64,000 bases of DNA, from assembly GCA_965240325.2 (NCBI GenBank), contig OZ251225.1, positions 1,612,001 to 1,676,000 of the forward strand, read 5' to 3'. How positions within the stretch are numbered: the first letter of the stretch is position 1; each line of letters starts with the position of its first letter. This document shows positions 3,026-62,846 of this stretch, in pieces. The notes under the pieces were generated by a model. That model ran no database searches. It was not told the origin of the DNA and worked only from the letters and a program-made list of their open reading frames with translations. Made by a program: the position numbers and the translations under genes. The stretch comes from Rebecca billardiae RCC1528. Lineage: Eukaryota > Protista > Haptophyta.

Positions 3026-3059
<34 letters not shown>

Positions 3060-6238: not shown

Positions 6239-6487
6239 GGTGCCACGCAGGCCTACGCGCGCTGCCGCGCTCGCTCGCCCCGCCGCTGCTGCGAGCCTGC
6301 CGCTCGCTCCTCTCCCCGCGCGCGCTGCCGCACGCTTGCAGCGCCCGCGCTGCTGCTGCTCTCTCGGGAGCAACCGGCTGGTGCACACACCTCTCCTCCT
6401 CGCCAGTTCAAATGCCGCAATGGCGGCCAGAGTCCGGACCAGCCACTCTGATAGCCGGACTTTGTCTGGCAGTGCCGGCCGGCCGCC

Positions 6488-19500: not shown

Positions 19501-19597
19501 GCACGATCCAAGGCAGCCCCTTCTTGCCCTCCGCGCGCAGCGGGAGCGGTATGAAGTGCACGAAGACGGGCGCTGAGCCCGTCGTCGCCCCGCCCAT
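16511..19597 (-). CDS. Multidomain protein: His/Cys-rich N-terminal domain, coiled coil, flavin reductase-like domain; probable in-frame intron 18707-19108
   Basis: VCVLTAR..GVTVSSVTCCSMTPPMVSLNV..FSLHVL..LARHFA..AGDHWVLTARV..PLVY is the Flavin_Reduct pattern (~17260-17785); GAG|GTGCGC and ACAG|GTG splice sites flank a non-coding-like segment. Confidence 0.75.
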   Translation of the reverse strand: MGGATTGSAPVFVHFIPLPLRAEGKKGLPWIVHTCDGSPCAEADHVNFKTLIGFETYEGTPPEQTCNCTVSKHHLRGHGRVRWEGSTAVIECADEDENRLVNVASFRSDAKRQAREIGSMRTETRRLREEHEKSFVATGQLKARVTELERTKMELETAVREGEVRASTPHASARAARGPPPTAAPRERNALEARAASRRWASLRERRRQNTLPGRGIDERAQSHAHRSLHTTRQPLPAKQPSGPPTPPKPRLLPARVGLRGWSPVSDGVYAAPARRAWHTRTHAPSARAPPPPSRAQVFKKKYSNVLSQQRSLTARCRELEAVAAAARDGVEQPSGQQQQSRARTKPRRVLRRTASKKGGALDAGAAEKGSPATDEGGADADDDDADGAGSAGARSEDEEEVDMRGTGVGESDELLARSLSAELVDHSAHVDLGLEAAGTGETGPGGFRGSFRGSFRGGGATATRLSAVLGADSPSARAALRRHVCALILAATGWHARQRRRQLEPPPGIGGAKSTAVHSALRSPSVSVSSSSASELWTGPAGPAATGGAGAGGSAVAFSCAPVAEADAPADGASAPAARPLAPASAAPPAGAPMSSSELAECQSNLRALLTHTAQQVCVLTARARGRRIGVTVSSVTCCSMTPPMVSLNVAVGSRAEALLVGEAGRATGSPFSLHVLAEGSSSLARHFARRGMSDAETFGPVAWTLSTSGLAQPVLLDSDGGAGAGAKLDARVQGTMECAAEQAMLAGDHWVLTARVCATTTAEALGAPPLVYHARAYGSVRREAEAGTSVGGMASRAPAAPSAVPSMAPQPALPSAAAAAAPLGTRQEGAPAGAPPSGAQLGGAQHAGPERSSSKQTAYYRPGHAAQPTHGPPAGAPPSFAATAMPGSGLAQLSPRRAHALSSSMGSAAHRAQPPPLVAARTQPLTEPPRQLPVASSLQEGGRRLPPSHRALPRSSRLQHAGALSSTGGLERRHSLAGGVYAPSAHHGAHDPVPAHARGAARRSSAAVSVISLGGAMAPSTYRLQY

Positions 19598-20797
19598 GGG
19601 TTCGCCGGCAAGGGCGGCGGCAGCCCTCCTCCGCGGGCGGGGGGAGAAACAACTCGCAGCGTCCTCTCGAGACGTTTCACGTCCAACTTGTTCCAGCTTC
19701 AGACCCGCGGACGAACCGGAATCGGGCTCGCACCTTTCAGAGGCCTCGCGAATCCACGATGGCTTCAGCCCCGCGTGCGTGGGACGTCGCGCACAAGGCC
19801 ATCGTCACGGGCCTGTTTGCGACCACGATCCTGGCGGGCTCATTCGTGTTCCTCAATGTGGGCAACATCTTCCAGCGAGCGTACACACGGCGACAGGAGC
19901 AGCAAAAATAGGTCGTAAGACGTTCATGGCCGGCGCGGGTTTGGCAAGGCAGCACCGCGGCTGCCAGCGCCACGGCTTGCGGGTGGTGACCTCTTTTTGC
20001 ACATCGCTGCTGCGCCAGAAGCTCCCATCAGGGACGCCGGCCCCGGCACAGAGCGCCAAATGCGCATCCCCCTACCACCAGCTGCACACCAGATGATGCA
20101 CTGTCCATTTGCTGTGGCTGGCCGGCGCCGATATCAGCGCCAGCTAACACAAGCTGCGCAGCTAAATGGACACGGCGAGCCAATGATCCCCGCTTGGACC
20201 TAAGGATTCAACGTTGTGATCGAGCCCACGATCGTGACCGGGCTGAGTCGTGGCCGGGCGGTTGCCGGACGCTGGTCGCTCGCCACTCGGTGCCACGGTG
20301 CTCGGCAGCGGCCCGGTCCGCGGCCCGCGGTCTGCGCACTGTGAGAACAACGCTTTCAAATGGCATGCTGGGCCCGAGACCGAGTCGCTGACCAGACTTT
20401 GTCATTGTTGGCAGCAGTCGTTGGCATTGCCGCCGCGCGGCCGAGTCGGAGTGCGAGCTCAACGGTGCGACTGACGGCGACATGTCTATCACAGATTATC
20501 AGGCATCAAGTACTCAATTACTATTACTAATGCTGTGCGCATATATGACCGCGTTCCGCGGTCCTTTTCTGCATAGAATCAACGCAGTTGGGGGCCCGCG
20601 GTGGCCGTGCAATCGCGGCTCTCCGCCGTAGTGGCAGTTCGCCAGTTGAAGTCGGTTCTGAGATGACTGAAGCTATATTAGTCCGACCGTCGCCCTGCCT
20701 GCGCGACCGCGAGACTCACTTCACACTTCACACAATCACAGCAGCGGACCTGAGACCGCACCCGGCACCGGTCGTCAAATCGGACGTCCGTCTGACA

Positions 20798-20945
20798 ACT
20801 AGCTGCCAAATGTCCAACTGGCTGATCAGCTCGGATCCGACCCGTCCGCGATCGTGCCATCGGCATCGGAATTACTACTAGTAGCTGCCAAACTGTGTCC
20901 AACTCTGGCTGATCAGCTCGGATCCGACCCGTCCGCGATCGTGCC
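20798..20945. repeat. Imperfect ~60-bp direct repeat, 2 copies (20798-20858, ~20882-20945)
   Basis: tagctgccaaa..tgtccaact..ggctgatcagctcggatccgacccgtccgcgatcgtgcc occurs twice. Confidence 0.9.
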
Positions 20946-22103
20946 GAGTGAGTCGTGCCGCGGAGCTCGGAGTACTGAAGGAGTCGGGTGTGACAGCAGG
21001 GTGCTTTAGCGCTGCGGCCCGTGCCAGCCAACGACCAGACGTACTCTGGCCACTTGACCCGTTGCACGGGTGAGTGACCGTAGTCCGTACGCCCTGCCTA
21101 GTGCCTACCGCGCGCGCCGCGCGACCGGCGACTCGGGGTGATGGAGAGCGGATGGCGACAGCAGCAGCAGTCCTCATGAAGACGATGAAACTGGCGGCAC
21201 GGGTGCACGAGGTGGCAGGCGAAAGCGCGCCGACGAGACCGCATTTGACACACCTGAGCCGCACGCGCGTGCCGTCGCCGAGCGGCGAGCGCTGCAAACG
21301 CGCAACCGTACCGCGCGCGCCACGACGGCGCGGCACTAGCTGATGCAGGCCGTACTGCCGGCACTGCTTCTGCGATCATGCGCCACGGTCGCAGCTGACT
21401 GCGTGAGCAGCAAGCGGGAGGCGGGTCCGGAGGCACGTGCAGGCGCCGTCCCGCATATCCGCCATCGCCCATCGTGCCGGGGCACGTCACCTCCGACGAT
21501 CCGGATGTGGCCCAGTCCGGACGTCACGCGATCCGGGAAGACGAGTACGATTCGCTCGTAACGAACCGTTACACTAATGTCACGTCCAGCTGACGTCCAG
21601 ATCGCACTTTACTTAAGGGAATCAGCTGGGCGCGGGTTTTTTTGGCCTGATAGACCTCTCAATGCGATCTCAAAAACTCGAAACTCGGTCTCCGCCAGCC
21701 CTAAAAATCGCCCCCCGTCCCTTTTTTTCCGCCGCCCCCCGTCCCTTTTTTCTTGATCAAAGATCTTTTTGAAACGTGGTTCGGGCCCGCTGGTGCGGGC
21801 TCCACGCTGCGCGCTCCGCCCTGCACCGCGGGCCATCATCATCAAATATGAGCGCCTAATCGGCAGCAGTAATTAATAGCAACGTTGATTATTCATCTCA
21901 GATATGTGACGACTGACGATCAGGAACTCAGTCGTATTAAAGTTATTATTAGCTGCTTACCAGGTCCATCAGGGGCGTTCCCCGCACTACTGGTCATATA
22001 CGCCGTGATATACGCCACTTAATCGAACGGCGAACGTTCCTATTGAAATTGGCTTCCTCTATTTCAAGCGGGTACATTTGATTACGGCCCGCGCCAGTCC
22101 GGT

Positions 22104-22145
22104 AGCAATGCCCCCCCCCCAGGGGGGGGGGGGGGGGGCATTGCT
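22104..22145. repeat. Inverted repeat agcaatg-C10-a-G17-cattgct
   Basis: Direct reading; the arms are reverse complements. Confidence 0.85.
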
Positions 22146-22613
22146 TTCGGGAGCGTGTGGCAGGATCCCGGGAACGCCCTCGGTGACATCTTCGCCTGAT
22201 GATTCAATCAGGCAATCAGCAGCAGTATTATTGATGACTCGTGAGCTATTAAGCGCGCGATAGCGAGTCCGCGGGCGCGGCCGCGCCTGCGTTGAGTCAC
22301 ACGCCCACAGGAGGCTTCAGCAGTAGTACGAGTCACGTTACTGGTAACTGCTGGTGACTCGATGTCATACCGTACTAGCAGTACGACTACCCATCTCGGA
22401 TTTAATCGGCGGGCCGCGGGCGCGGGCCCCGCGCGGGCCGGGCCGCGGTTAACTTCGCGGTCAGCGCGCGACATCTCAATCTGTGATCTGACGAGACGAA
22501 TAAACGGCGGTACTGTACCCGTTTACTACTGGGGCGGCGGGGCCATCAAGTATGAGCGCGGCGCGTCATCATCATTATGACGATTATCTCAGAGACAGAG
22601 TCATAATGAGCCG

Positions 22614-23555
22614 CTAGCGCATACGCTTCTCCAAGAAGCGCTGCTTCTTGAGGTACCCGATAGGAATGTCCTCGGACGCGTCCGGCTTGCGCTTCGGTGC
22701 GCTCGGTTGCGGCCCGCCCCTCGGCTCGGCGTCGCGCTCGGTGGGTCCTGCACCCGCGCTCGGCCGGAGCACCTTGCCGAGGACGGCCTTGTCCAGCGCG
22801 GGCGCGCTCTCGGCCGTCGGTGCGGTGAGCACGGGCTTCTGGCCGAACATGCGTCGCACCCGCATGGCGCTCGCCGAGCTCGACGCGCCATCGGCACGTC
22901 GGCCGGCCGCGTCATCATCCCCGCCCGCATCCGCGCGCTGCGCCGCTTCGCGCGCGCCCGCCTCGGCCTCGGCCTTCCCGCCTCCGCCCGCGCCGCGCCC
23001 TCGCTTTCGGCTGGCCATCGCGTCGATGGCCTTGGAGCGGCTGACCTGCTGCATGTAGAAGGTGTTCTCGCGCTTGGCCTGCGCGAGCTCAAGCCGCAGC
23101 TTCTGCTCCCGCACCTTCGCCTCGTGCGCCAGCCGCTCGGTCAGGTCGTTCCACTTGAACTTGGGCAGGTACTTGATGTTCCACAGGTCCGAGGCATAGA
23201 AGCCGCGCTTGTTGCCGCCGATCGCCGAGTTGTTGAGCGTGGTGGCGAGGCGCTTCGCGACGCGCTTATCGGCGAACTCGACCCAGCCCTCCGTGAACAT
23301 CTGCTTCCGGTTCCCTCCCGACCGGATCCGCTTGGCCCGCACGGTCTTGTCCTCGGGCGCGAGGTAGATGCGCAGCACGTCCGTGCCAAAGCCGGAGAGG
23401 AGCTGGCGCAGCTTCTGCGGCTTGAGGTAGGGCGGGACGCGAGCGATGTAGCAGACGCCCTTTCGCTCGTTCTCCTCGTTGAACTTGACCAGGCGCTTCT
23501 TCGAGAGGTTCCTGAGCGGGGCCACTCGCTTCGCGACACCTTCAGCGTCTGCCAT
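22614..23555 (-). CDS. ESF2: Pre-rRNA processing protein ESF2/ABT1
   Basis: GVCYIARVPPYLKPQKLRQLLS; RIYLAPED; FTEGWVEF; DLWNIKYLPKFKWNDLTE. Confidence 0.96.
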   Translation of the reverse strand: MADAEGVAKRVAPLRNLSKKRLVKFNEENERKGVCYIARVPPYLKPQKLRQLLSGFGTDVLRIYLAPEDKTVRAKRIRSGGNRKQMFTEGWVEFADKRVAKRLATTLNNSAIGGNKRGFYASDLWNIKYLPKFKWNDLTERLAHEAKVREQKLRLELAQAKRENTFYMQQVSRSKAIDAMASRKRGRGAGGGGKAEAEAGAREAAQRADAGGDDDAAGRRADGASSSASAMRVRRMFGQKPVLTAPTAESAPALDKAVLGKVLRPSAGAGPTERDAEPRGGPQPSAPKRKPDASEDIPIGYLKKQRFLEKRMR

Positions 23556-23758
23556 TCCACGCCGCTGTGCCCAGCCAGGCTCCCGACCAGAACTGCACCG
23601 GACCGGCCGGACTGATCAGGAATAACGGCATTCGGTTACGTCCAGCTCTTATTGATTTCCGGGCGATGCGCCATCGTCACCGCGCTGCAACTTCGCGACC
23701 ACTACGGTCGGGGACTCCGCCACCCCCGACACAGCGCGCACGCGCGCGGCCGGGGAGG

Positions 23759-26700
23759 ATGGCCGAGGCCGTGAAGGTCGCCGTGCGCTGCCGGCCGTTC
23801 AACGGTCGTGAGAAGGAGCGGAATGCGACGCTGATCATCGACATGATCGGGAACACCACCAAGATCACCGACCCGGCCTCCGGCAAGCACAAGGAGTACA
23901 CGTTCGACTACTCGTACTGGTCGCACGACGGGTTCCACGAGCGCGAGGACGGCTACCTCGAGGCGGACAAGGGGTCGAAGTACGCGGACCAGCAGCAGGT
24001 GATGAACGACCTCGGCATGGGCGTGCTGGAGAACGCGTGGAACGGCTTCCACTCGTGCGTGTTTGCGTACGGGCAGACGGGCTCGGGCAAGTCGTACTCG
24101 ATCGTCGGGTACGGCACCAACAAGGGGGTGATCCCGCAGACGTGCGCGGAGATGTTCCGGCGGACGGACGCGGAGGGCTCCGACGAGCGCCGCTTCGAAG
24201 TCGAGGCCTCGATGATGGAGATCTACAACGAGAAGATGCGCGACCTGCTCAACCCGAAGATGTCGGACAAGCTCAAGATCCGCGAGACGAAGCAGCTCGG
24301 CGTGTACGTGGAGTCGCTCACGACGGTGGCGGTCAAGTCGTACAAGGAGATCGAGCACCAGATGGAGGTGGGCACCGCGCACCGCACCATCGGCTCGACC
24401 AACATGAACGCCACCTCGTCGCGCGCGCACACGGTGTTTGCGATCACGTTCAAGCAGTTCACGCGCCAGGGCACCGCGTGGGGCGAGACCAAGTCGGTGA
24501 TCAACCTGGTGGACCTGGCGGGCTCGGAGCGCGCGGAGTCGACGGGCGCGACGGGCGACCGTCTCAAGGAGGGCGCCGCCATCAACTCGTCCCTCACCGC
24601 GCTCGGCCAGGTGATCACCGCGCTCGCGGAGAACTCTGGCAACTCGAAGAAGAAGACGTTCGTGCCGTTCCGCAACTCCGTGCTGACGCGGCTGCTGCAG
24701 TCGGCGCTCGGCGGCAACTCGAAGACGGTGATGGTGGCGGCGCTCTCGCCCGCCGACATCAACTACGACGAGACCCTCTCCACCCTCCGCTACGCCGACA
24801 ACGCCAAGAAGATCAAGACGGCCGCGGTGAAGAACGAGGACCCGACCGCCAAGATGATCCGCGAGCTCAAGGAGGAGAACGAGAAGCTCAAGAAGATGCT
24901 CGAGGGGCAGGGCGGCGACCTGAGCGCGCTGGCGGGCTCGGGGCTGCAGAACGAGCAGCTCGAGGCCGCGCAGGCCGCCGCCGCCGCCGCCGAGCAGGAG
25001 GCCAAGGCGGCGAAGGAGGCGATGCTCGCCGCGCGCGCCGAGGTGGAGGCGGCGCAGCAGCAGATGTCCGAGTTCCAGCACAAGATGAAGCTGCTGGAGT
25101 CCGAGTCCGGCTGGTCGGACGAGCTGAACGCGCTGCGGAACGAGCTCGCGTCGAAGGACTCGTACATCGACCAGCTCAAGCAGGCGGGCGACGCCGAGGC
25201 CGTCGTCGCCGCGCAGCAGGCGAACGCGAAGGAGGTCGAGCGGCTGCAGCAGGAGCTTGCGGCCGCGCAGTCGAGCGCGACGAGCGCCACCGCCGCCTTC
25301 ATCAAGGACGAGGCGAAGGCGGCGGTGAACCAGTCGGCGCTGTACGTGCTCGAGAGCTCGGGCGCGACGAACGAGGTCGAGCAGCGCCGCGCCGCGCGCG
25401 ACGAGCTCGCGCGCCAGCTGCAGCGCGCCGGCTCGACCGTGGACGAGGCGCAGGTGCAGGCGGTGATGGACAAGATGGGCACCGCCTCCAGCCTCGCCGC
25501 GATCGGCGAGGGCGCGGCGGCCGACCTGCTCGCGATCCAGCAGCAGATCTCGGCGGACGCGGAGAAGTCGGTGTCGGCGGCGAAGGCGGCCGAGAAGGCG
25601 CTCGAGAAGCTCGCCGCCTCCAACGCCGAGATCCGCGAGCTGCAGGAGCAGGAGGCCGCGTCGTTCGAGGCGCGGTCCGCGGCCGAGGAGGCTCGGATCC
25701 AGGCGGCGGTCGAGAAGGCGACCGTCGACGTGCTCTCGAAGGTGGAGGAGAAGGCGGGCTCGGGGCAGGCGACGGCGGCGGACGAGGCGGCGCTGCGCGC
25801 CGAGCTCCTCGCCCAGCTCGAGGCCGAGATGAAGGAGAAGAAGGACTCGGCCGTGATGCAGGCCGCGGTCTCGCGCTCGGTCGGCAAGCTGATCGGCGCG
25901 GCGCACGCGTCGAGCGCGGGCGACGCGGCCGCCAAGGCGGAGATCGCCAAGGTGCGCACGCAGATGCAGGGCGAGGCGGACATGGCTTTCAAGCAGGCGA
26001 AGGAGCTCGCCTCCGTCGCCGACCGCCACGCGCGCGAGGCGGGCAAGCAGCGCGCCGCGCTCGAGGACAAGGCGCAGCAGGTCGCAGCGCTCAAGAAAGA
26101 GCTCGCCGAGTCGACGGCGGCAAAGGACGCGGCGCACGCGGCGCTCACGCAGTCGCGCATCGACCGCGCGGCGCTGCGGCTGTCGCAGCAGATCGAGTCG
26201 GGCGAGCTCTCCTCCGCCACGCCCACCGCCGACCTCCGGCGCAGGCTCATCACCGAGGTGCACGACGCCGGCGTCGGCGCCGCGCCCATCGACATGGACT
26301 CCTCGGCCGCGCAGGCGATGCTCGACGCCAACGTGATGCGGCTCGAGGCGGCGTGCCAGAAGGCAAAGGTGTCCGAGTCGTCGCGCGCGCAGGTGGAGTC
26401 GATGCGCGACACGCTGCGCGCGGAGGTGCTCGAGGCGCACGCCGCGACGAAGAAGGCCAAGGAGGAAGCCGACGCGCGCCTCGCCGAGCTGCAGAAGGCC
26501 AAGTCGGAGGCCGACTCGCGCAACGCCGAGCTCGAGTCGCTGCGCATCGAGCTCCAGAGCGTCGGCAAGAACGCCACCTCGACCAAGGTGGCGTCGGCGT
26601 TCAGCGGCGCGCAGCTGCAGGCGGAGAAGCAGCGGCTGCGCGCGAAGCTCGCCGCCGAGATGGAGGCGGCGCAGGCCAAGGTCGCCACCGCGCAGCAGTC

Positions 26701-29700
26701 CGAGCAGTCGAACGCGGTCGCTTCCAAGGCGGCCGAGCAGGCGGAGCGCGCGGCCGCCGAGTCTGCGCGCATCGCGCGCGAGGAGCTCGCGGCGGCGCAG
26801 GCGCTGGCGCAGGAGCAGGCGGAGCAGCTGAAGGAGCTGCAGAACAAGTCCGCCGCCGAGCGCGAGCAGCTGCTCAAGGAGCTCGAGGCCAAGTCGCAGG
26901 AGGCCGCGCAGCAGGGCGACGTCTCGAAGAAGCTCGACTTCCAGCGGCAGATGAAGCGCATCTCTGACCGCAACAAACTCGAGTCTGAGATGAAGGCCAA
27001 GGCGCGCGAGCAGCTCGAGGCGAACGAGAAGATGGTGGCCGAGCTGGGCAAGTCGTGGGAGGAGAAGCTGAAGCAGGCGGAGGAGCTCGAGTCCGGCCGC
27101 AAGGAGCTCCTCACCAAGATGGGCCTGCACGGGCTGGGCGAGGAGGGCATCGACGAGAAGACGCCGCACCTCGTGAATCTCCACGAGGACCCTCTGATGT
27201 CCGGCCAGCTCATCCACTTCCTCAAGCCGGGCGTGACGCTGGTGGGCTCGAAGGAGGACGCGGGCGTCGTGCTCAACGGCGTCTCGATCGAGGCCGAGCA
27301 CTGCAAGCTCACCAACGAGGCCGGCGCCGTGCACATCGAGCCGCTCGGCAAAGCGGTCACGTTTGTGAACGGCAAGCGGCTCGAGAGCCGCCGGCCGCTC
27401 GAGCACTCGGCGCGCGTGATCATCGGGCAGAACGCGATCTTCCGGTTCGCCGACCCGACCGAGGCGGAGAAGCAGCGCGCCGCGAGCGGCGGTAAGGCGA
27501 AGGACGCCTTCTCCGGCGTGATCGACTGGGACATGGCGCAGAAGGAGCTGCACGAGGCGCTGCAGTCGTCCGTGCAGCTTAAGGTCGACGAGGAGGTCGA
27601 GCGCGAGCGCAAGGCGATGGAGTCGCGCCTCAAGGAGATGGAGGAGAAGCTCGCGCGCGAGCGGGCGGCGTCGGAGGCGGCGGCGAACGCGGAGAAGGAG
27701 GCGATCCTGCAGCAGCTCCGCGAGCGCGAGAAGGCGATGGAGGAGCTCCGCGAGAAGCAGTTCGAGGCCGAGAAGAACGCCGTGCGCAACGAGGCGCGCG
27801 CACAGGCGCTCGAAGAGGAGCGCGATCGCAACAAGGGCAACGCGGCGCCGGGCGGGCCGAACGCGGGCGCGGTGGGCACGATGGGCCTCGGCGTGCAGCG
27901 GCCCAAGGCGGGCGGCGGCATGCTCGGCGCCGTCCGCCCGGGCACCGCCGGCGGCGCCGCACCCCCGGCCGGCGGAGCGCTCGACCCGAGCGCGGAGCTG
28001 CTGCAGATCAAGGCCCAGTACGCGGCCGTGGACAAAAGCCACACAGCGCGCATCGACGCGATCCAGATGGCGCACAGGGAGAGCATGGACGAGGTGGACA
28101 AGTCGCGCTCGTCGATGGACCAGGGGCTCGGGCAGTACAAGCTCGACCTGCAGCGCATCGAGGACGAGCTGCGCACCGCGCACCCCGCCGTCGTCGAGGC
28201 GAACGCGATCGCGGACGCCATGGGCCGCAAGGTCGAGGTCCGTACTCACATCCGCATCGAGACACCCGAGGTGATGGGTCTCTCTCCGATCCAGGAGCTG
28301 CTGCAGGTGCGCCGCGCGCACCTCGAGTACCAGCTCGTGATCCACGGGGACCAGAAGGGCAAGCAGCGCGTCACCACGTGGGCGGCCGACGAGTTCTGGC
28401 GCCGCGTCGACCGCTTCCGCGACGCGCACGCATACTACCTCAAGCACAACAGGCAGCCGTTTGAGACGCGCGATGAGGACCCTTTCTACGCGCCGCCCGC
28501 CGCGGAGACGCTCGGCAAGGCGGTGCTCTTCCTCAAGCCGCTCGCGCACCGCATGCGGCTGCAGACGTGGGCGCCGATCTTCGACCCGTCCGGCGCCAAG
28601 ATGGGCGAGCTCCAGCTCGCCTTCCAGCCCACCGAGCTCGACTTTGTGAGCGCGACGCGGCCGGTGCTCAACCCGAGCGACGCGGTCGGGCAGGCGAGCG
28701 CGGCCATCCTCAGGATTCAGCAGGCGCGCGGGCTGCCGCCGCACCACTGCACGAACGTGTTCGTCAAGTACTCCGCCGACGGGATGGAGGAGCGCTCCAC
28801 CGCGATCGTCTCGGGCAAGAACGCCACGCCGCGCTTCGACCACCGCGACCACCTCGCCTTCGGCGAGATGTCGCCCGCGCTCATCTCCTTCCTCACGCGC
28901 GACGCGCTGACGCTCGAGGTCGTGGCTGAGCCCGACGACATCGAGGAGGGCCTCGTGACCGAGGCGCCGAAGACCGCGGCGTCCGCCGCGGGGGCGAACC
29001 CGTACGACGGCGGGGAGCTGCCCCCCGAGGTCTTCGACTTCAACATCGCCGTCGACCTGCTCGAGGGCACGGCCGACGCGGACGCGAGCAACTTTGAGCG
29101 CTGCCGATTCGACGGCGGCTCCAACGCTCTCGGCGTGCCGAGCGGGTGCGCGCGAGCGCGCGGCGCGGCGCGGCGCGCGTGCACGTGCGCTCGAGCCGGC
29201 GCGCTGCGCCGCTGGCCCGCCGAGCCAGACCCGCTGACGCGACGCCTGCCCCGCCGCCCCGCCGTGCGCCGATCGCGCGCCGCACCGCGCGCCCTCGCCG
29301 CTGCCGCGACGCGCCCGGCCCGGCGCTGCGCGACGGCGCCGTCTGCGTGTGCGCGCAGCATCTTCACGCTCACGCACCAGCGGCCGCGGCGCATCCTGCT
29401 CCAGTGCGTGCAGGGGACGACCCAGGCGTACCCGATCAAGCACGTCGTCTCCGCGTGGATCGGCCGCGTGCAGGACCCGTACGGCAACGAGGTCGAGCCG
29501 CAGCAGGTCCCGCTGCAGGTGCTCTCCATGTCGACGACCGCGGACGGTCGCACGACCAACATCGTCGCCAACTGGTTCCGGGGCCCGCCGCTCCTCGACC
29601 AGGTGCGGCGCGGCCTGCGCGGCTGGCGCGTGCCGCGCCCGCGCCCGCGCATGCGCACCGCCCGAGCACGTGCGCGCGCCTCCCGACCCCGCCCTCCCCG

Positions 29701-30405
29701 CGCCGTCCCGCCCGCAGCTGAGCCCCGAGGGCACAGTCTTCTTCCCGACGGTCACGCTCGAGGTCGAGCTGCGCAACCTCGACCTGGCCGCTCCGATCGC
29801 GCTCACCAAGATGTTCGCGCTGCGCGTCGAGGACACGAAGCCGGTGCAGCGCAACAAGTCGTACTTCTTCTCGCGCAACGCGTCGTCGAGCAAGCGCGGC
29901 GGTGGCAGCGCGGCTGCCACGCCGGGCGGGCCGGTCAACGACAAGATGCAGTTCGATGACGAACACGTGCGCCGCCTCGCGCGCGACGCGTGCGCGGCCT
30001 TGCTCGCGCGCGCGCGCGTCGGGCCGCGGCGGCGGCCGCGGCGCGCGCAGTCGCGGCCGGCGGCGCGCGCGTGACGCGCGCCCCGCCCCACCCCCTTCCG
30101 CGCGGCGCGGCGCGGCGCGTGCGCAGGCGAAGCAGCGGCTGCAGCACACCTCCACCATCCAGCAGGTGAAGATGGGCTCGCTCGAGCGCTCGGACGACGC
30201 GGTCGCGAAGCAGCGCGAGGAGATGAAGCGGCTGCTCGAGAAGGAGACGCAGGTGACAGCGGCCGAGGGCAAGAAGAAGCTGCTCGGCGACGCGTCCAAG
30301 ACGATCGAGACGCTCCAGAAGGCGCTGCAGGCGGAGGAGCAGCGGCAGGACTCGGAGCTGCAGCGCGCCATGCTCGCGTTGCGTCAGATGGGCGGCGGCG
30401 TGTGA
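23759..30405 (+). CDS. Kinesin-3 family motor (motor, long helical insert, FHA, C2-like); exons 23759-29145, 29359-29602, 29718-29966, 30127-30405
   Basis: VKVAVRCRPFN, FDYSYWSHDG, FAYGQTGSGKSYS, SSRAH, LVDLAGSER, LSPADINYDETLSTLRYA; FHA from PHLVNLHEDP to IFRF (~27164-27448); GT-AG introns. Confidence 0.93.
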
Positions 30406-30845
30406 GCACGCAGTGCACGCACTGCCGACTGCCGCACTGCTGACTGCACGGCGTTCGGACTGCTGCAGCCTCAGGGAACACCAGGAAGTATATATATATA
30501 TGCGCTGTATACGCGCGATGACTACACTCGCGCCTCGCGTATATGATACGCGTCATCAGCAGCACATCAGACTCTGCTGGTGTTGTCAGAGTCATCGTCG
30601 TCGTGACTCACGTTGTCATCATCGTCGTCATCAGATACTACTCGCGTCAGCAGTGTCATCAGTGTGCATCATATCATCCGACGAAGCTAGCGCGCGTTCA
30701 CTATGAGTGACTACGAGACCGAGAGTACGACGACTGCTCCTCCGTGACCGTCCTCGGCGACTGACCTCGTCGGCCGGCTCAGGGCAGGCATGATGACGGC
30801 GCACGCAGACCGATGGGGCGCTACTCCCACGGTATGACAGCAGTA

Positions 30846-31964
30846 TCATCGCCGCCCGGAGTCGGCCTCCTCGTCGTTGCGCGCGGTCTCGCCGGCTCCT
30901 CGAGGCGCCTCGATGCGCGCGAGGAGCGATCGGACGATCTCGCCCGCCGCGACCCGCGCAGAGCCTGCGCCCGCCGCCATCTGCGCGTGCTGCGCCCGCA
31001 CCAGCTGCTGAACGTGCGCGCTGTGCCGAAGGCGGCTCTCGAGCTCGCCGAGCACCCCCGACCAGAGCAGCTTCAGCCGCTGCTGCTCCCGCCGGCGCGC
31101 GTGCTCGCCCGACGCCTGCGCCGCTCGCTGGAACTCGCGCAGCACCGCGAGGACGCTGCCGACCGACTGGTCGCACCTGTTGGAGCACGTGAGCACGCGC
31201 GGCTGCCACGACGACGAGCGTGGGCGCACGAGGGAGAGCGCCGAGGCGAACTCCTTCGCGATGCTTCGCGCGGCCGGCAGCAGGTCGCCGTCGGCCTTGG
31301 TGACGACGACGATGTCGGCGAGCTCCACCAGCCCGCGCTTGATCGCCTGCAGCCCGTCGCCAGCGGCAGGTGGCAGCAGCAGCAGCATGACGTCCACCAT
31401 GTTGTCCACCTCCACCTCAGACTGGCCGACGCCGACCGTTTCGATGAGGACGTGATCGTGGCCCGCCGCCTCGCAGAGCGTGATCGCGTCGTGCGTGCGG
31501 AGCGCGACGCCGCCCAGCGTGCCGCCCGCAGGGCTCGGCCGGACGTACGCCTCGTCGCGCATCGAGAGGGTCGACATGCGCGTTTTGTCGCCGAGGATCG
31601 AGCCTCCGCTCGCGACGGAGGACGGATCGACGGCCAGCACCGCCACGCGCCGGCCCTCGCCGATGAGGATGCAGCCGAGCGCCTCAATAAACGTGGACTT
31701 GCCCGCACCCGGCGGGCCGGTGACGCCGATGCGAAGCGAGCGCCCCTGCGGCCGCTCGCCGATGCGCGAGAGCATCGCCTCCGCGCGGTCGAGGTCCTGC
31801 GGGCGCGAGGACTCGACGAGCGTGATGGCGCGGCTCAGCGCTGCGCGCTCGCCAGAGAGCACGCGGTCGGCGAGCTCGTGTGGCGGCCAGCCGTGCACCC
31901 AGCGCCTCGCATGTGCGCCATGCACAGAAGCGAGGCTTGCCAGCCGGAGTCTTCGAGCCGCCAT
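30846..31964 (-). CDS. MMAA: Methylmalonyl-CoA mutase-associated GTPase MMAA/MeaB, likely mitochondrial
   Basis: RAALSRAITLVES; GVTGPPGAGKST; VLAVDPSS..GGSILGDKTRM; ETVGVGQSE; IKRGLVELAD; TKAD; R-rich presequence. Confidence 0.96.
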   Translation of the reverse strand: MAARRLRLASLASVHGAHARRWVHGWPPHELADRVLSGERAALSRAITLVESSRPQDLDRAEAMLSRIGERPQGRSLRIGVTGPPGAGKSTFIEALGCILIGEGRRVAVLAVDPSSVASGGSILGDKTRMSTLSMRDEAYVRPSPAGGTLGGVALRTHDAITLCEAAGHDHVLIETVGVGQSEVEVDNMVDVMLLLLPPAAGDGLQAIKRGLVELADIVVVTKADGDLLPAARSIAKEFASALSLVRPRSSSWQPRVLTCSNRCDQSVGSVLAVLREFQRAAQASGEHARRREQQRLKLLWSGVLGELESRLRHSAHVQQLVRAQHAQMAAGAGSARVAAGEIVRSLLARIEAPRGAGETARNDEEADSGRR

Positions 31965-32173
31965 CGTGATCGAACGCGGCCCGACTCAGACGTTGAGATC
32001 TGGATCCGGTTCGCGCGATCAAGGGATGCGGGTACGCTCGCTATATTTAGCCCTATGCGGCAGTGACCAAGATTACATAGATGCCCCTGGCTCTGCGCCG
32101 GTCAGCAAGCAAAAAGCAAGGAGGGTGGCCGCTGCCAAGGGCCCGAGAGGGGGCTGCACGCCTTTCGGGCGCC

Positions 32174-35100
32174 ATGGGCAGCGCGCGCGGGCGGATGCGC
32201 GCCCTCGCGCTGCTGGCGCTGGTGCCCGTCGCCTTTGGCGCGACCAAGATCTGCACGCCCTACGCGGCGAACATCGGCCCGACCTTCATCACGGTCGCGT
32301 GGGATGGGCTCGTGTCTGGCTCGTTCTCGGACTGCTCGCTCACGGGCGTCTCGTTCACCAAGTTCCGCGTGGTGCAACTGGCTAGTGGCACGCGCGCTTC
32401 TGTGCGTGGCTTTGCGCCTGCCCTTTCTCGCCGGCCGCCGCCCTCGCTGCCTCGCCGTCCCCCTTGGCAGCGCGGCGCGGCCGCGAACTGAAGTGGCGAT
32501 GCGCCCTGCCCCGCGGTCTCGGCCGCCACCGCCTTGCGCTGCGCAGGTGAGCTACGAGACGACGGGCACGGCGTTGTACACGTTGGATATCGCGAACCTC
32601 GTGTCTTCCACCACGTACGAGTTCTACGTCGTCGCCGTCGACGCGTCCAACGCGGCAATATCGAGCACGCAGAGCTCGAACAGCGGGCTCATCCAGACGG
32701 AGGCGGCCGTCACGGGCGAGATCGCGTCGTACTGGTTCCTCTCGGCGCGTGAGGCGGTGACGCAGAAGCTGCGCTTCTTCGAGAACAACTTCCCGTTCGT
32801 CATCGAGAACGACTACAACGCGGCAACCAATGCGCTCGTCAACAAGCTGTCGTTCAAAGCGAACAGCGTCACCGCCTTCACCATCATCGGCGCAACCAAG
32901 CGCACGCAGTTCGAGACTGCGGTCACGATGAACGACGTGCTCGAGTTCGGCAGCTCGGGCGGGACCGCGATCAGCGCATCGACGATCGGAATCCCCACCG
33001 GCGGCGTGCTGCGCGTCGGGGGCGCCCTGACGGTCGGCGCGGCGAGCGGCGCGGGTCAGCTCGTCTTTGCAGACGGCCTGCTGAACGTGACAGAGGCTGA
33101 CCAGACGCTCGAGTTCGGCGAGCTGATCACCGTGAGCGCGACGGCGGGCTCGATCGAGTCGACGTCGCTGCTCGTCACCGACGGCGCCTCGACGCTCACG
33201 CTCAGCGCCGCGGGCGCCGCGCTCAGTGGCAGCGCGGACGACGTCGCGCTGAGCAAGGCGGGCGTGGCCAACGCGCTCACCGTCCAGTTCGGTGCGGATG
33301 GCGCCACCTCGGGCCCGGCGTTCAACACGCCGCTCAACCAGCTGCGCGTGGATACGGTGCGTGGCCCGTCGGACGGGACGCTCACGCTGCGCGACGCCAC
33401 GAGCATCCAGGCGCCCGCCTCCGACGGCATCATCACGCTCAGCGGCGACGGCGGCGGAGGGTCTGCCGTCGTGGTCGACACGGGGGCGGGCTCGGTCACC
33501 GCCGCCCAGCTTGACGCGACGGACATCACGACGCAGACGCTCGAGGCGCAGACGGTGTCGGGGCTGACGACGGTGGCGTTCGACAGCACCGCGGCGACGT
33601 CGATCTCCAACCTGCAGGAGATGCTCGGCCTCGTCACCCTCTCCACCGCCAACCTCACCATCACCGGCGGGCTGGACGTGGCAGACGGCGCGCTGGTCGA
33701 TCTGGGCGATCTCGTGAGCGTCGACACCGGCGACGGCCGCGTGAACGCGGTGGTGCTGCAGCTCGAGGACGTGCCGGGCGGGGCGAGCACGGACACGCTC
33801 GTGCTCGCGTACAACACGCTCGAGATCGGCGACCCGACCGGCGAGTTCACCTTCACCGCCGCCGGCGCCGCCGGCAACGTGATGATCACGCCGGGCGTGG
33901 GGCTGCTCACGCTGGACCGCGTCGAGACGTCGTCCGTGCTCGCGACCGAGGTGGAGGGGCTCGCGACGGTCACGTTCGACGCGGGGGCGGACACGGCGAT
34001 CGTCAACCTGAAGACGATGGATGGCGTGCAGAGCCTCGGCGGCGTCGCCAACCTCAGCGTCACCACCTCGATGCGCGCGGACGTCGGCGCCGTCGTCGAG
34101 TTTGGCGACCTGGCAGGCGTGGACACGTCCGCTGGCCGCGTCGATGCCGACCGGCTGCGGCTGACCGACGCGCTGTCCCCGTCGGACCGGGCGGTGTTCT
34201 CGACGGCTGGGCTGGCGCTGGAGACGGGGGCGGGCACGTACACGCTGAGCTCCTCGCTCGGCGGCGACACCATCGTCGCCACGCCCGGCGAGGGCAAGCT
34301 CGAGCTCGTCGACCTCGTGGCCTCGGACACGGTGCGCGCGACGACGGCCGCAGGCCTCACAGACATCGAGTTCAGCGCCACGGCCGCGTGGACGTCGGTC
34401 ACGGGCCTCGACGAGATGCTCGGGCTGACGAACATGTCGACATCGTCGCTGCTCGTGAGCTCGGACTTGAGCGTGTCCTCCGGCGCCCTCTTCCAGCTCG
34501 GCGAGCGCGTGAGCGTGCAGACGGCGACCGGCGGCGTGCGCGCCGTCACGCTCGAGCTGAGCGATCTCGTGTTGGCCGAGAGCCAGGTGCTCGTCCTCTC
34601 GGCTGGCGGGATCGAGCTCGGTGCGGACAGCGGCGGCAACTTCACGTTCAGCAGGAGCGGCGGCGCGAGCGAGATCGTGCTCTTCCCGGGCGACGGCCGG
34701 CTCGACCTCGTCGACGTGGTCGCCTCCTCCTCGGTGCGCACGCCGCTCGTGTCGGACGTGCTCACGATTGCGTTCGACCCGAGCGCGGCCACGGCCATCA
34801 CCAACCTCAAGGTGATGGACGGTGTGGAGAGCCTCGGCGGGGTCGTCAACATGAGCGTGACGACCACGCTGTACGTCGAGCCGGGCGCCGCCGTCGGCTT
34901 CGGCGACCTCGTCAGCGTGCACACCGACGAGGGCCGCGTGCGCGCCGACAGCCTCCAGCTGCTGAACGCCGACAGCGGCGACACGCTCGCGCTCGCGACC
35001 AGCGGCATCGCGCTCGAGACGGGCACGAACGTGTTCACCTTCTCGCAGCCGGACTCGGCGGTGCGCATCACGCTGGAGCCGGCCGTGGGCCAGCTCAACC

Positions 35101-38100
35101 TCACCGACCTGCAGTCGACGAGCATCACCGCCGCCCGCATCGACGGCCTAGCGCTCGTCGAGTTCGACGCCAGCGCCAACGTGACCGAGGTCACCGGCCT
35201 GCGCCGGCTGCGCAGCCTCGAGGAATTGCTTTCGCTCGACGTCGAGGCGACCGAGCGGCTGCGCGCGGCGAGCGGCGCGACGGTCGAGTTCGGCGACCTG
35301 GCGCGCGTGCTCACCACGATCGGCGCGTACGAGGGCACGAGCCTGCTCGTCGAGGCCGGCACCAACGCCACGAGCGTGCAGCCGCACGCGCTCGAGATCA
35401 GCGCGGGCGCGACCGTCCGACTCGACCCGAGCTCGGTCGTGATTGATGGCACGGACGGCGGCAGCTTCACGTTCCGCGACGCGGCGAACGAGTCGAGCTC
35501 GATCGTGATGCGCCCAGGCGCGAGCCTGATGAGCTTCGCGCGGCTCGAGACCAGCTCGATCATCGCCACCTCGCTCGAGGCGCTGCAGACGCTCACGTTT
35601 GGCGACGTCGGCCTGAGCTCCATCGCCAACGTGGACGAGATCTCCGCTGGCGCGCTCGAGCTGAGCGCCGGCATCGACGTGGCGGCAGGCGCGTACGTGA
35701 CGCTGGGCGAGCTCGTCGCGGTGAACACGACGGAGGGGCGCATCAGCGCGGTCGTCCTGCAGCTCGAGGACAGCGCCGGCTCGGGCGACAACCTCGTCCT
35801 GTGGTCGGGCGGTCTCGAGGTGAACGTCGGCGCGGAGTTTGTGCTCAGCGCGGCCGGCGAAACGGGCAACGTCGTCGTCGCGCCTGGCGTGGGGCGCGTG
35901 ACGCTCACAAGCGTCGTCGCCGCGGACATGTTCGCGGCGACGATCGACGGGCTCGCGACGGTCACCTTCGACCCCGCGGACGACACGACCACGTCGATCG
36001 TCGGGCTGCAGCAGCTCGAGGGGCTCGAGCTTCTCGGCGCAGCCAACGCGACCGTCGGCCAGCGGCTCGAGGTGAGCGCGGGCGCGGCCGTCGAGCTGGG
36101 CACACTGGTGAGCGTGGACACGGTCGCGGGCGACGTGAAGGCGGCGTCGATCAGCGTCAGCGCGGGCGACGGCGGCGGCTCGACGGGCAGCTATGTACTC
36201 GCGCCCGGCTTCCTCCAGCTCACCTCTGGGAGCACGCTCCAGTTCCTGGACTCGCAGCAGGCTGCGCCGGCCACCATCTTCACGGTCACGCCGTCGACGA
36301 GCGCGCTCGACTTGCTCGCGCTCAACGCGCAGGACGTGCAAGCCTCCACGATCTCAGGCCTCACCTCCATCGACTTCGACGCGGTCGAGCCGAGCACGGT
36401 CATCACCAACCTCAAGGTGATGCAGGGCCTCGACACCTTCTCGTCGCAGAGCGTCGAGATCGGCGCCAACCTCGCTGTGACCGCGGGAGCGGCCGTCGAC
36501 TTTGGCGCGCTCGTCTCCGTCGACACGACTCTGGGCGACGTGCTGGCGAGCCGGCTGCAGCTCACGCCGACCGGATCCGGAGAGGACGCGCTGCACCTCA
36601 TCGCCGACGCGGAGTCGTTCTACTTCCGAACGCCCGACGGCGCGAGCAACGTGACCGTCACGCCGTCGGTCGGTCAGATTGACGCTGTCACGCTGCGCGT
36701 GGCCGACGTCGTCGCGCAGACGGTGCGCGGCCTGGAGATCCTCGAGTTCGACTCGGTCTCGGGCAGCGCGGAGATCCGGAACGTGGACGCGATCCTCGGC
36801 GTGACGGACATGTCCACGAGCAGCCTCGACATCCAGTCCTCGCTCGTCGTGGAGTCGGGCGCCGAGGTCCTGCTCGGCCCCGCCCTCAGCGTCGCGACGG
36901 GCACGGGTGTGATGAGCGCGCACGCGGCGATCGCGATCAACGAGACGCGCTCGTTGCAGATGGGCGCGGACGGGCTCACGCTGGGCGAGTCGACGGCGCA
37001 ATTCTTCCTCACCAAGGAAGCCACCGCCGCGGCGCTCACCCTCGCCTTCGCCGGCGCGGACGCCGACCCGGACGTGAGCGGCCCGGTGATTTTCCCCGAG
37101 GACAGCAAGATGCTTGTCGACACCGTGCAGGCGCGCACGGATCCGGGGCTGGCGCTGCTGCAGGTGCGGCAGATCAGCGCGGGCCAGAGCGGCGTGATCA
37201 CTGTCGGCGAGGGCGAGGGCGCCTCGAACGTCACCATCACGCCGGCGCTCGGCCTGATCAACGCGTACGAGATGCGCGCAGACGTGTTCAGCACGCCCGT
37301 GATCGGAGGCGTCTCCACGCTCACCTTCAGCGGGGGCGAGGGGGCGTCGGTGATCTCCGAGCTCGACCAGATCACCGGGCTGGGCGAGCTGGACGTGCAG
37401 CACATCGCTGTCTCGAGGAGCCTCAACGTGAGCAGCGCCGCCTCCGTCCAGCTCGGCGCGAACGTGTACGTCGAGCCGGCGGCGGGTGCGGTCCGCGCGT
37501 CGGTGTTTGAGGCAAAGGACCCGACCGTGCTGGCGCCCGAGCAGTCGGCTCTCGAGCTGCGGCCCGATGGGTTAGAGCTCACGGGCACGACGGAGGACAT
37601 TGTTCTGGGCAAGTCCGGCGTGGACCAGGCGCTCAACGTGCTGCTCGGCCAGGCGTCCCCGGCAAAGGCCGGCCCGGTGATCGACGTGCTCGGCAACGAG
37701 CTGCGCGTGGCCACGGTGTCCGCGTACGACGCGAGCGTTGGGCTCGAGCTGCAGCGTGTGCGGAACATCACGTCGGATGGGCGCATCGCGTTCCGCGCGA
37801 GCGACGCGGGCGCTGCGGATGCGCTGGTGCTGACGCACGAGAGCAGCGGCGTCGGCGTGAGCGTGACCGACCTCGAGTTCAACGCCGATCTGAGCTCGAT
37901 CACGATGGGCGCGCTGAGCATCACGGCGGAAGCCACAGGCCAGCAGTACAAACTCTCCGGCCTCACGGAGCTCATCGTGGGCGGGATCTCCGCCTCGAGC
38001 ACCGGGAGCGCTGACGTGCTCTCCGTCGGCCCGACGACCATCACCGACACCGCGCAGGTCGCCGAGCTCGCCTTTGGCAGGCGCGGCGTGTTCTCCGCGT

Positions 38101-40306
38101 CCGACGCGACGGAGACGGTGCAGCTGGGCGCGGACGTGGCCGTCGACACTGCGAACGGCGCGCTGAGCGCGGCGACGATGCGCACGCAGAACATCACGGT
38201 CCTCGCATCCGCGGGGGACACTGACTCGGTGATGGTGCGCGCGGCGTCTGGGCCGGAGCTCGTGCTCGAGCCTGCCTCGAATGCTCTCTTCCCGTCCGTG
38301 AGCGGCAGCTTCAGCGTGAGTTTTGGGCTGGGCTTCGACGGCTTTGGCACAGACGCGCCCTTCCTGAATGCGGCAGACAACGCGCTGTACGTGGCCAAGG
38401 TCGAGCCGTCGAACAGCGAGCAGCTGCTCTACCTCGGCCACGTCGACGTGCTCACCTCGGACGCGACGATCCGCTTCGCGACCCAGGACCAGCTGAGCCA
38501 GCTCGAGCTCGTGCCGTCATCACGCTCGCTGCTCGGCCTGCGCGTCCTGGAATTTGACGCGGACGGCGAGCAGCAGCTCCGCCTGGGCAACATCAGCGTG
38601 AGCGCGGGCGGCGCGCTCGACGGGGTGCTCACGGTGGGCGACGTCTTTCGCGCCTCCACCGACGGCAGCGTGCGCATGGGCGAGCAGCTCGAGGTCGGCA
38701 CGGCCGCGGGCGTGCTCACGGCACACACGCTGCTCGCGACGGATGCGCTGCAGGCCGGGAGCGTCATCTCGATCTCGTCCGCCGGCAGCGCGCCGAGCTC
38801 GGGCGCGGCGTCCGCCAGCGAGACGTTCCTGCAGCACCGCCAGCTGCAGCTCTCGCAGGAGTCCTTCCTCACGCCCGAGGAGCTCGTGCTGCGCTCGGGC
38901 GCGGGCGCGGGCGCACTCGCGCTCTGCAGCAGCGAACCGCTGTGCGAGCAGCCAGCTGTGCAGAGCGACACCGGCGTGCTCGACCTCTTCGCGAACGCGT
39001 CGGCGGCGAACTGGACGGTGCGCATCGGCACAGGCGAGTCGAGCTTCGACACCACGATCGACTCGCTCGGGCTGAGCGCGCCGTACCTCCGCTCGAGCTC
39101 AGGCGCGCTCACGCTGTCCGCGGCCGCCTCAGGCTTCAGCTTCGACATTGCGGGTGATTCGCTGCTCACGGCGTCGACAGACGCCATGGTGGTGAACTCG
39201 GGCGTCGCCACGTTCGCCGGCGAGATCACCGCGAGCGGCAAGATCGAGACGGTGCGCGCACGCGCGCGCGCTCTGCACCCACCGCGCGCGTCACCCGCGG
39301 CTGCGCGCGCGGCCGAGTGCGTGGGCGGTGCGGCTGAGCCCGAGCGTGCGCGCGGCCGCGCGTGTCGCTCGGCGCGCAGTCGGGGCGCATGGTCGTGGAC
39401 GGCGTGCTGCGCGCCAACAGCGGCATCGTCATGAAAGGCGACGACGTGATCGTCGCCAACAACCTCGCCTCGGACGAGTTCCACCCGCTCAAGCTCGAGT
39501 CGAATTACTACACGGGCATCAAGATCAAGGTGCGGCGCACCGCGCGCCGCACCGCGCGCACCGCGCGCACCGCGCGCACCGCGCGCACCGCGCGCACCGC
39601 GCGCACGCCGAGCGAGCGCCGGCATCGCTGCGCCTGCGTAGGCAGACCGAGCGGGGCGTGCGCGCGCGCGGCGCGCGGTGCGGCGCTCACGCGCGGCCGC
39701 GTGCCCCGCCTCGCTTCCTCGCGCGCCGCGGCGCAGGTGAGCGGCGACGAGATCATGATGGTCACCGCGTCGGGCGTGACTGTGAACGGCACGCTCGAGG
39801 CGCGCGGCGGCATCATCACGCCTAGCGTCAAGGCTGACATCTCAAACCTCACGCTCTCCTCCGAGTCGATGTCCGTCGAGTTCGAGGTGGGCAACTCCAC
39901 GATCGGCCGGGTGAGCTCGGGCGGCATCGCCGTCGACTCGGGCATGAACTTCACCGCGCCGCTCGGCTCCGCCATGCTCTTTGGCGACATGCCCATGTAC
40001 TCGGACGCGACGACGGGCAACTGGCGCGCCGCGTCGCCCGTGCTCGTGCTCGACGGCGCGCAGACGGGCGGCGGCTCGCTGCTCGTGTCCAACGACCTGC
40101 AGGTGGAGGAAGAGGCATTTTTCAACGGCTCAACCTGGTTCGGCGACGAGATCGTGCTCGCCGACCCCACTTCGAAAGCCCATCCACAGCCGCCATCGGC
40201 GTCGAGCGAGGGATGCGTCGTCGGGGCATTGAGATGGGACAACAACTACTTTTATTTGTGCGTCGAGGGCGAAACATGGAAGCGAGCCCCTCTCTCCACC
40301 TTCTGA
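32174..40306 (+). CDS. Giant secreted protein (~2,540 aa): signal peptide, FN3-like domain, ~10 beta-rich ~132-aa repeats, phage-fibre-like C-terminal motif; exons ~32174-32368(71), 32547-39251, 39380-39529, 39737-40306
   Basis: MRALALLALVPVAFGA signal; ITVAW..LVSSTTYEFYVVAV FN3 pattern; 6.7-kb open exon; recurring GL(A/T)xxxFD units; GT-AG introns join the frames. Confidence 0.88.
39535..39606. repeat. 9-bp tandem repeat (accgcgcgc)n inside an intron
   Basis: Roughly 7-8 copies; translates as RTA repeats in the ORF track. Confidence 0.9.
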
Positions 40307-62706: not shown

Positions 62707-62846
62707 CGCGCGCGTCGTGCACGGCGGCCGGGCGGAGACGAGCAGGCCGAGCAAAGCGAGGCGGTTTGAAATTGGCCGGTCCGGCTCGCAGAGAACCTCC
62801 GGCGGAGTCCGGGCGAGTGCTCGCGCCTCGCGCGCGACACGCGCCC

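Follow-up and report, generated by a model that had tools for sequence, protein, structure and literature searches.

A nuclear gene of the pavlovophyte alga Rebecca billardiae for a giant secreted, probably fibrous protein with a tailed-phage-type C-terminal domain

The foldon of T4 fibritin and the C-propeptide of procollagen are units at the C-terminal ends of long trimeric fibres, where they set the register of the chains. Another small C-terminal module is found on structural proteins of tailed phages, including the 1,730-amino-acid (aa) 'structural protein' gp094 of Synechococcus phage ACG-2014b and the fibres, tailspikes and depolymerases of Klebsiella phages (the 792-aa tail protein of Whistle, the tailspike of 0507-KN2-1 and the K30/K69 depolymerase of K64-1). 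Among viruses of haptophytes, the giant virus CpV-BQ1 has been reported to carry an 'FN3 domain containing tail fiber protein' and a 'WIAG-tail domain' protein (PMC12085832). Here, a stretch of 64,000 nucleotides (nt) from the haptophyte Rebecca billardiae RCC1528 (assembly GCA_965240325.2, contig OZ251225.1, positions 1,612,001 to 1,676,000; hereafter the window) was analysed, in which positions 32174-40306 (+) form a single four-exon gene (66+2235+50+189 aa) for a predicted protein of 2,540 aa. Sequence comparison shows genuine homology between the last 40-170 residues of this protein and the domain that ends the tail fibres and tailspikes of tailed phages. An original prediction made from the letters of the window had suggested that the protein might be a trimeric beta-fibre of viral origin that gained introns and a secretion signal.

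All searches and fold predictions of the window protein used single exons or parts of exons as queries. The phage-type end module occupies positions 40184..40303 (+), that is, ~40 aa at exon-4 residues 150-189. In PHROGs, the last 39 residues matched the last 39 positions of phrog_17312, a 'tail protein' family (E 1e-5), and tblastn against 50,697 phage genomes (2.3 Gb) returned 113 records (best E 7e-6), mainly from Synechococcus cyanophages and Klebsiella phages and also from phages of Cellulophaga, Sphingomonas and Vibrio. Both phage matches that were opened lay at the extreme C-terminus, one in the 1,730-aa gp094, which is encoded beside neck genes, and the other in the 792-aa tail protein. 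Furthermore, phmmer against 1.84 billion cluster representatives (clusters at 50% identity) retrieved 131 at E ≤ 1e-3, and residues P153, G163, W167, D168, Y171, Y173, C175, T180, W181, K182, R183 and L186 each occurred in 80-97% of the 131 representatives, conservation being counted as the share of representatives with the window's own residue. A simple pattern located the module in 112 proteins, and in 107 of them its core is followed by just 6-7 residues; in the window protein 6 residues follow it. Weaker similarity to phage, prophage and bacterial proteins extends over ~110-170 aa, back to exon-4 residue ~17-80 in the best non-eukaryotic phmmer matches, which span 107-172 residues (P0005, E 2.4e-8, residues 83-189; P0007, E 3.5e-7; P0018, E 1.5e-5, residues 17-188). 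Pattern scans with exon 4 and with alignments A2 and A5 found no relatives in metagenome and IMG/VR contigs.

The same region was the only part of exon 4 to fold with confidence. An AlphaFold2 monomer model of exon 4 was confident for residues 150-189 alone (predicted local distance difference test score, pLDDT, 91-96), where it placed three short strands. In a Foldseek search of BFVD, this model superposed on the predicted ends of many Caudovirales proteins with a root-mean-square deviation of 0.6-0.9 A over 38-40 residues (32-44% identity, probability 1.0), both sides of the superposition being predicted models. The partners included tail fibres, pectate-lyase-type spikes, collagen-like proteins and a mycobacteriophage minor tail protein. 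By its signature, its C-terminal position and its predicted three-stranded fold, the end of the window protein belongs with the module at the C-termini of PHROG 17312 and 37350. These data bear out the presence of the C-terminal motif described in the original prediction, far above chance, with PHROG, tblastn and phmmer matches to phage and bacterial proteins. The motif had been described as one that ends many phage, giant-virus and bacterial fibres, and this was essentially right for phages and bacteria. BFVD gave at least 500 matches; the best 50 included no giant-virus instance of the module and came from tailed phages, except for one non-significant chlorovirus match.

The phage proteins resemble the algal protein at its end and differ from it elsewhere. 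The last ~42 residues of ACG-2014b gp094 are 47.6% identical to it (E 7e-6), and a 190-aa 'virion structural protein' of cyanophage S-TIM5 aligns over ~150 exon-4 columns (Foldseek, E 2.4e-4); these cyanophage proteins and the alga both come from marine habitats. Unlike the algal gene, however, the cyanophage genes lie beside neck and tail genes and have neither introns nor a signal peptide, and the bodies of their products share nothing detectable with the algal rod. The Klebsiella phage proteins share the terminal module with the algal protein (41% identity across 48 aa that run to the last residue), and the predicted ends superpose; their shafts are right-handed beta-helix enzymes anchored to the virion, whereas the algal protein shows neither a beta-helix nor an enzyme signature. 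The CpV-BQ1 proteins, compared by description only, are likewise long, fibre-like proteins of the haptophyte world, one of them with FN3; NCBIfam gave no match of any kind to exon 4, and phmmer returned no long relative of the CpV-BQ1 type. The foldon and the procollagen C-propeptide offer an analogy of role, and a working analogy for mechanism, to a module that has no sequence or fold match to solved structures.

The gene begins with exon 1 (32174..32371 (+), 66 aa), which holds the start codon, the signal peptide, the first half of an FN3-like domain and two Cys. Intron 1 (32372..32546 (+), 175 nt, GT..AG, GC 0.75) is followed by exon 2 (32547..39251 (+), 2,235 aa) with the second FN3-like half, a conserved N-terminal region and a rod in which the tandem repeats are followed by a conserved C-terminal part; the in-frame translation upstream of exon 2, in the region of intron 1, is rich in Arg, Pro and Ala and non-coding in look. 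Intron 2 (39252..39379 (+), 128 nt), exon 3 (39380..39529 (+), 50 aa, 150 nt), intron 3 (39530..39736 (+), 207 nt, GC 0.86) and exon 4 (39737..40306 (+)) complete the gene, with 189 aa of C-terminal domain encoded at 39737-40303 and the stop codon at 40304-40306. All three introns are in phase 0, with GTGC donors and GCGCAG acceptors, and they are not copies of a dispersed element, their matches being GC-rich low-complexity sequence alone. Intron 3 also contains a 9-nt microsatellite (39543-39606, 7 copies, 98% matches), which reads in frame as a Thr-Ala-Arg run and leaves the intron open, bridging exons 3 and 4 in one open reading frame (ORF) at 39362-40306.

Transcripts of homologs demonstrated that these exons belong together. 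A 6,385-nt contig with a poly(A) end (L003) carries a single ORF of 2,085 aa (P0002), which covers homologs of exons 1-4 contiguously and in order; identity was 54% for exon 1, 29% for exon 2 (E 5e-102, colinear), 56% for exon 3 and 48-50% for exon 4. In addition, an MMETSP transcript product (P0001; 74% identity to exon 4) runs through the exon 3/exon 4 junction. The gene is expressed as one mRNA in relatives, and the proposal that the last exons might be a separate gene, which would have undone the original prediction, fails on the transcripts that span the junctions.

The features that place the protein in the secretory pathway, also anticipated in the original prediction, were confirmed from hydropathy and the small-residue rule. 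Kyte-Doolittle hydropathy over 19 residues exceeded 1.6 at exon 1 residues 10-28 alone (maximum 1.85), which form the hydrophobic core of the signal peptide, and the predicted cleavage site has small residues at -3 and -1 and is followed by Ala-Thr-Lys. The N-terminus of P0002 has the same layout. No second hydrophobic segment reached 1.6 in any exon, and the protein is therefore predicted to be an anchor-less protein of the eukaryotic secretory pathway, with no transmembrane segment. Plastid targeting was considered and rejected, as inspection found no bipartite signal after the predicted cleavage site. The gene carries both the spliceosomal introns and the secretion signal that had been claimed for it.

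The body encoded by exon 2 is the long, Cys-poor sequence rich in S/T/G/V/L/D that had been described from the letters (A 13.4, L 11.5, S 10.8, G 10.4, V 10.2, T 10.1 and D 6.5%), with 2 Cys in 2,235 residues. Its repeat array (33474..37646 (+), exon-2 residues ~310-1700) consists of ~10 diverged units of ~133 aa that are 30-35% identical to one another and show a two-unit (266-aa) super-period; the repeats were seen with chunked queries, whereas blastp of the whole of exon 2 against itself gave the self-match alone. The copies are old, because no DNA-level tandem repeat is left in the array. The non-repeat C-terminal rod part (37914..39251 (+), exon-2 residues 1790-2235) is kept in 4/4 eukaryotic homologs and contains both exon-2 Cys. 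The FN3-like domain that had also been proposed is weakly supported: Pfam fn3 (PF00041) matched the contiguous homolog P0002 below the cut-off (E 0.016, 15.8 bits against 25) and did not match exon 1 or exon 2 of the window alone, and neither half scores because intron 1 splits the domain.

No viral relatives of this body were detected. Exon 2 had no match in the 50,697 phage genomes, in two IMG/VR pattern scans, or in Pfam, PHROGs, NCBIfam and the PDB, and a protein search with exon 2 returned its own window ORF alone (P0137), the 8,000 candidates being saturated by low-complexity words. Profiles built from the repeats and from the conserved C-terminal end of the rod found nothing in the PDB, and sequence searches of Pfam, NCBIfam and the PDB with each exon and with profiles A1, A4 and A6 yielded nothing beyond sub-threshold echoes of sarcoglycan and BamA. 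Three sarcoglycans (beta, gamma and delta) fold together into a beta-rich tower of three chains, and this extracellular tower (PDB 9c3c, 8yt8) recurred below threshold in Pfam (Sarcoglycan_1, E 0.17), in the PDB profile search (E 0.36) and as the top Foldseek PDB row. All of these echoes are below significance and are only a hint as to fold class. Viral or bacterial kinship is confined to no more than 7% of the protein.

The window is nuclear DNA of a eukaryote, with genes for an FHA-domain kinesin-3, SMC2, ESF2, COX14, and flavin-reductase-domain, ankyrin and HEAT proteins. Its SMC2 is 65% identical to that of Diacronema lutheri and 63% to that of Pavlovales sp. CCMP2436, the next matches being at 46%, which makes the source a third pavlovophyte and agrees with the haptophyte affiliation presumed in the original prediction. 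GC content at third codon positions (GC3) is host-like, at 0.94 and 0.88 in the fibre gene compared to 0.98 in the neighbouring kinesin gene. A viral or proviral context was not found at the locus; the neighbours are eukaryotic, the GC3 is host-like, and introns and synteny with D. lutheri are present. In contigs L009-L011, a homolog lies beside an ESF2 gene that is 100% identical to D. lutheri KFE25_010227, which itself is on the same 1.0-Mb contig as D. lutheri SMC2. In D. lutheri JAGTXO010000012.1 (L013, 6650-9918), the gene model of the homolog encodes 877 aa and stands immediately upstream of ESF2-COX14. In the window, ESF2 (22692-23519 (-)), COX14 (19774-19899 (+)) and then the next gene are found 9-13 kb upstream of the fibre gene and inverted, such that the block at 19061-23519 corresponds to 10001-14491 of L013, and the kinesin-3/FHA ORF (2,130 aa, 23567-29959) intervenes. 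The two fibre genes are orthologs in a locally rearranged neighbourhood.

Comparison of these orthologs indicates a long residence in the algae. The acceptor of intron 2 and both boundaries of intron 3 are common to the window and D. lutheri, exon 3 is of equal length in the two, and D. lutheri and a fourth lineage (L012) share an extra phase-0 intron inside the module, between the equivalents of Q162 and G163 (L009 ~2359-2441, L012 ~4296-4522), which the window gene lacks. These introns rule out contamination and show long residence. In D. lutheri, the N-terminal region, ~450 residues at the end of the rod and exons 3-4 have been retained, and the ~1,400-aa repeat array is absent. Protein length accordingly varies from 877 aa in D. 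lutheri to 2,085 aa in P0002 and 2,540 aa in the window, an approximately three-fold range of rod length, and the absence of the array in D. lutheri shows that the rod was lengthened or shortened within the class. Taken together, the gene is nuclear, vertically inherited and old in pavlovophytes.

With moderate confidence, we favour the explanation that this nuclear pavlovophyte gene encodes a secreted, probably fibrous protein of ~2,540 aa whose end domain was horizontally acquired and serves as a trimer-nucleating cap. The chain would comprise a signal peptide, a Cys-containing FN3-like domain, a conserved N-terminal region, an all-beta rod of ~10 old repeats that vary in number from species to species, a conserved rod end and an end domain of ~110-170 aa. 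The end domain may have entered a pavlovophyte ancestor by horizontal transfer from a phage or a bacterium and been joined to a secreted repeat protein that had evolved in the host, with host codon usage and introns acquired later. In the lumen of the endoplasmic reticulum, and by analogy with the phage proteins, the module would then serve as a cap at the C-terminus, where it nucleates the assembly of a homotrimer and sets the register of the chains; zipping of the rod, begun at the C-terminal end and moving towards the N-terminal one, would produce a long extracellular fibre. The results above show the structure of the gene, its residence and age in eukaryotes and the homology of the end domain, whereas the direction of transfer, the trimeric state, the cap function and the extracellular fibre role are what we infer. 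The trimer and the cap are drawn from the following comparisons. The identifiable partner architectures of the module are collagen-like repeats, beta-helix depolymerase spikes, Mtd_N fibres and Peptidase_S74 fibres, and the trimer is suggested because every one of them is a known trimer former. The module also hardly varies among phages of Synechococcus, Klebsiella, Cellulophaga, Sphingomonas, Vibrio and Mycobacterium; a cap is preferred to a specificity tip because the module is near-invariant among phages of unrelated hosts and is pinned to the C-terminus. A generic glycan-binding tip would be a less likely function for it.

Several observations weigh against this explanation. The fold predictions behind it are models of monomers. 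The fibrous character is a probable one, drawn from composition, repeats and analogy: an AlphaFold2 model of three repeat units with a 3-row alignment was unusable (pLDDT 41.6), and a hydrophobic-periodicity test found no short solenoid-like sub-period in the repeats above shuffled controls. For the module itself, neither Pfam nor NCBIfam offers a model, and PDB sequence search and Foldseek found no solved structure; with the exon-4 model Foldseek gave nothing in the PDB below E 1.4, and the best, non-significant echoes there included the chitin-binding tails of the carbohydrate-binding module (CBM) family CBM5/12 (E 1.5-5, probability ≤ 0.35). Two copies of the module are present in three proteins and a single internal copy in three others, an arrangement more in keeping with a binding module than with a cap that must sit at the end. 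The double copies, some of them internal, are in the metagenomic proteins P0009 (755 aa), P0032 (745 aa) and P0038 (201 aa). In P0032, a Peptidase_S74 domain follows the module, which shows the two to be distinct, and Pfam found no such intramolecular chaperone (PF13884) at the C-terminus of the window protein at E ≤ 1. Lastly, phmmer found the gene family in pavlovophyte-like sequences alone, in a library that is not a full survey of protist genomes, and the donor could be a bacterium.

The genomic contexts of the non-eukaryotic relatives are mixed: a phage-like 58.7-kb contig, a site beside a phage integrase and an HNH gene, a small contig, and a bacterial glycan-synthesis cluster, the genes around the relatives having little support in PHROGs. 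A bacterial protein of 347 aa that is related to the exon-4 domain over its whole length (L005 8620-9663; L006 8592-9635) is encoded inside a cluster with an ABC-2 transporter, a glycosyltransferase and a WsaF-type glycan gene, and the domain is therefore not confined to phages. A phage donor is not distinguishable from a bacterial one, and the end domain is old and probably derived from a phage or a bacterium.

A secreted adhesin or matrix protein that works as a monomer, its rod being either a row of separate beta domains or a solenoid made of one chain and its module a small carbohydrate-binding unit, is an unlikely explanation but one that deserves attention. The module folds confidently alone as a three-stranded sheet rich in conserved W and Y, its weak structural echoes are to CBM73 as well as CBM5/12, its partner domains include Laminin_G_3 and polysaccharide deacetylase, and a repeat length of 133 aa suits discrete domains; the few proteins with internal or double copies fit here as well. 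However, no Pfam CBM match was found at E ≤ 1, CBM5/12 included, all PDB fold matches had E > 1, and the fold model of the repeats was not confident. The strict position of the module in 107/112 proteins and the exclusively trimeric shafts of its partners favour an end cap instead.

That the whole protein is a domesticated trimeric beta-fibre of a phage or giant virus, to which introns and a signal peptide were added later, is distinctly improbable, although the end domain is of the phage type, phage proteins with the module can be as long as that of ACG-2014b, and the FN3-containing tail-fibre protein reported from a haptophyte giant virus is known here by description (PMC12085832). The 2,235-aa body went unmatched in the phage genomes, the IMG/VR scans, PHROGs and PDB profiles, the best BFVD matches pointed to tailed phages as described above, and the repeat array missing from the D. 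lutheri ortholog argues that the array grew within algae. The viral origin put forward in the original prediction is thus partly supported: the end domain is of a phage or bacterial type, whereas domestication of a whole fibre is not shown. Chance or convergent likeness, or bacterial or phage contamination of the assembly, would have the short (~40 aa) and compositionally biased core in its favour, but both are refuted and have next to no probability, given E values down to 2.4e-8 for non-eukaryotic matches over 110-170 aa, twelve positions conserved at 80-97%, predicted structures that superpose at 0.6-0.9 A, spliceosomal introns (one inside the module in two homologs), host-like GC3, eukaryotic flanks, D. 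lutheri synteny and poly(A) cDNA.

Elsewhere in the 64-kb window, tblastn found no paralog of the fibre gene. SMC2 (2531-6910 (-)), the kinesin gene (+) and a HEAT-repeat protein gene (58771-62754 (-)) are single ORFs of 1,300-2,100 aa, and the region appears intron-poor compared to the three introns of the fibre gene. A 417-aa ATG ORF without a Pfam match lies between the kinesin and fibre genes (30813-32066 (+)) and is either a gene or GC-rich noise. Opposite the kinesin and fibre genes lie very long antisense ORFs (23702-30595 (-), 33056-36121 (-) and 32382-34922 (-)), the longest of 2,297 aa; they have no Pfam match and look less like genes than like by-products of a GC3 of ~0.94-0.98.

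To our knowledge, transfers of tailed-phage structural domains into eukaryotic nuclear genes have rarely been documented, and the literature searched described neither a comparable transfer, nor the module, nor a phage-fibre gene in a haptophyte. The gene is old, intron-bearing, expressed in relatives and kept in at least four pavlovophyte lineages, which indicates that it is functional and not debris. The module is widespread (131 clusters, with cyanophage, Klebsiella, Cellulophaga and mycobacteriophage fibres among them), yet it has been left without a family model or a solved structure, and the fact that it has survived in a secretory protein of a eukaryote speaks independently for a self-sufficient assembly or binding unit. 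A role in flagellar hairs, scales or adhesion is speculation; it is possible, and put forward here tentatively, that an ancient phage or bacterial fibre cap now serves the algal secretory pathway in building a lineage-specific, length-variable extracellular fibre, for which the fine flagellar hairs or surface material characteristic of this class would be the candidate. We know of no characterised surface or flagellar appendage protein of the Pavlovophyceae, and the gene is a candidate for an extracellular fibrous component of this class. If the tentative reading of an algal fibre built on such a cap is true, the end domain of a tailed-phage fibre would work within a eukaryotic cell-surface structure.

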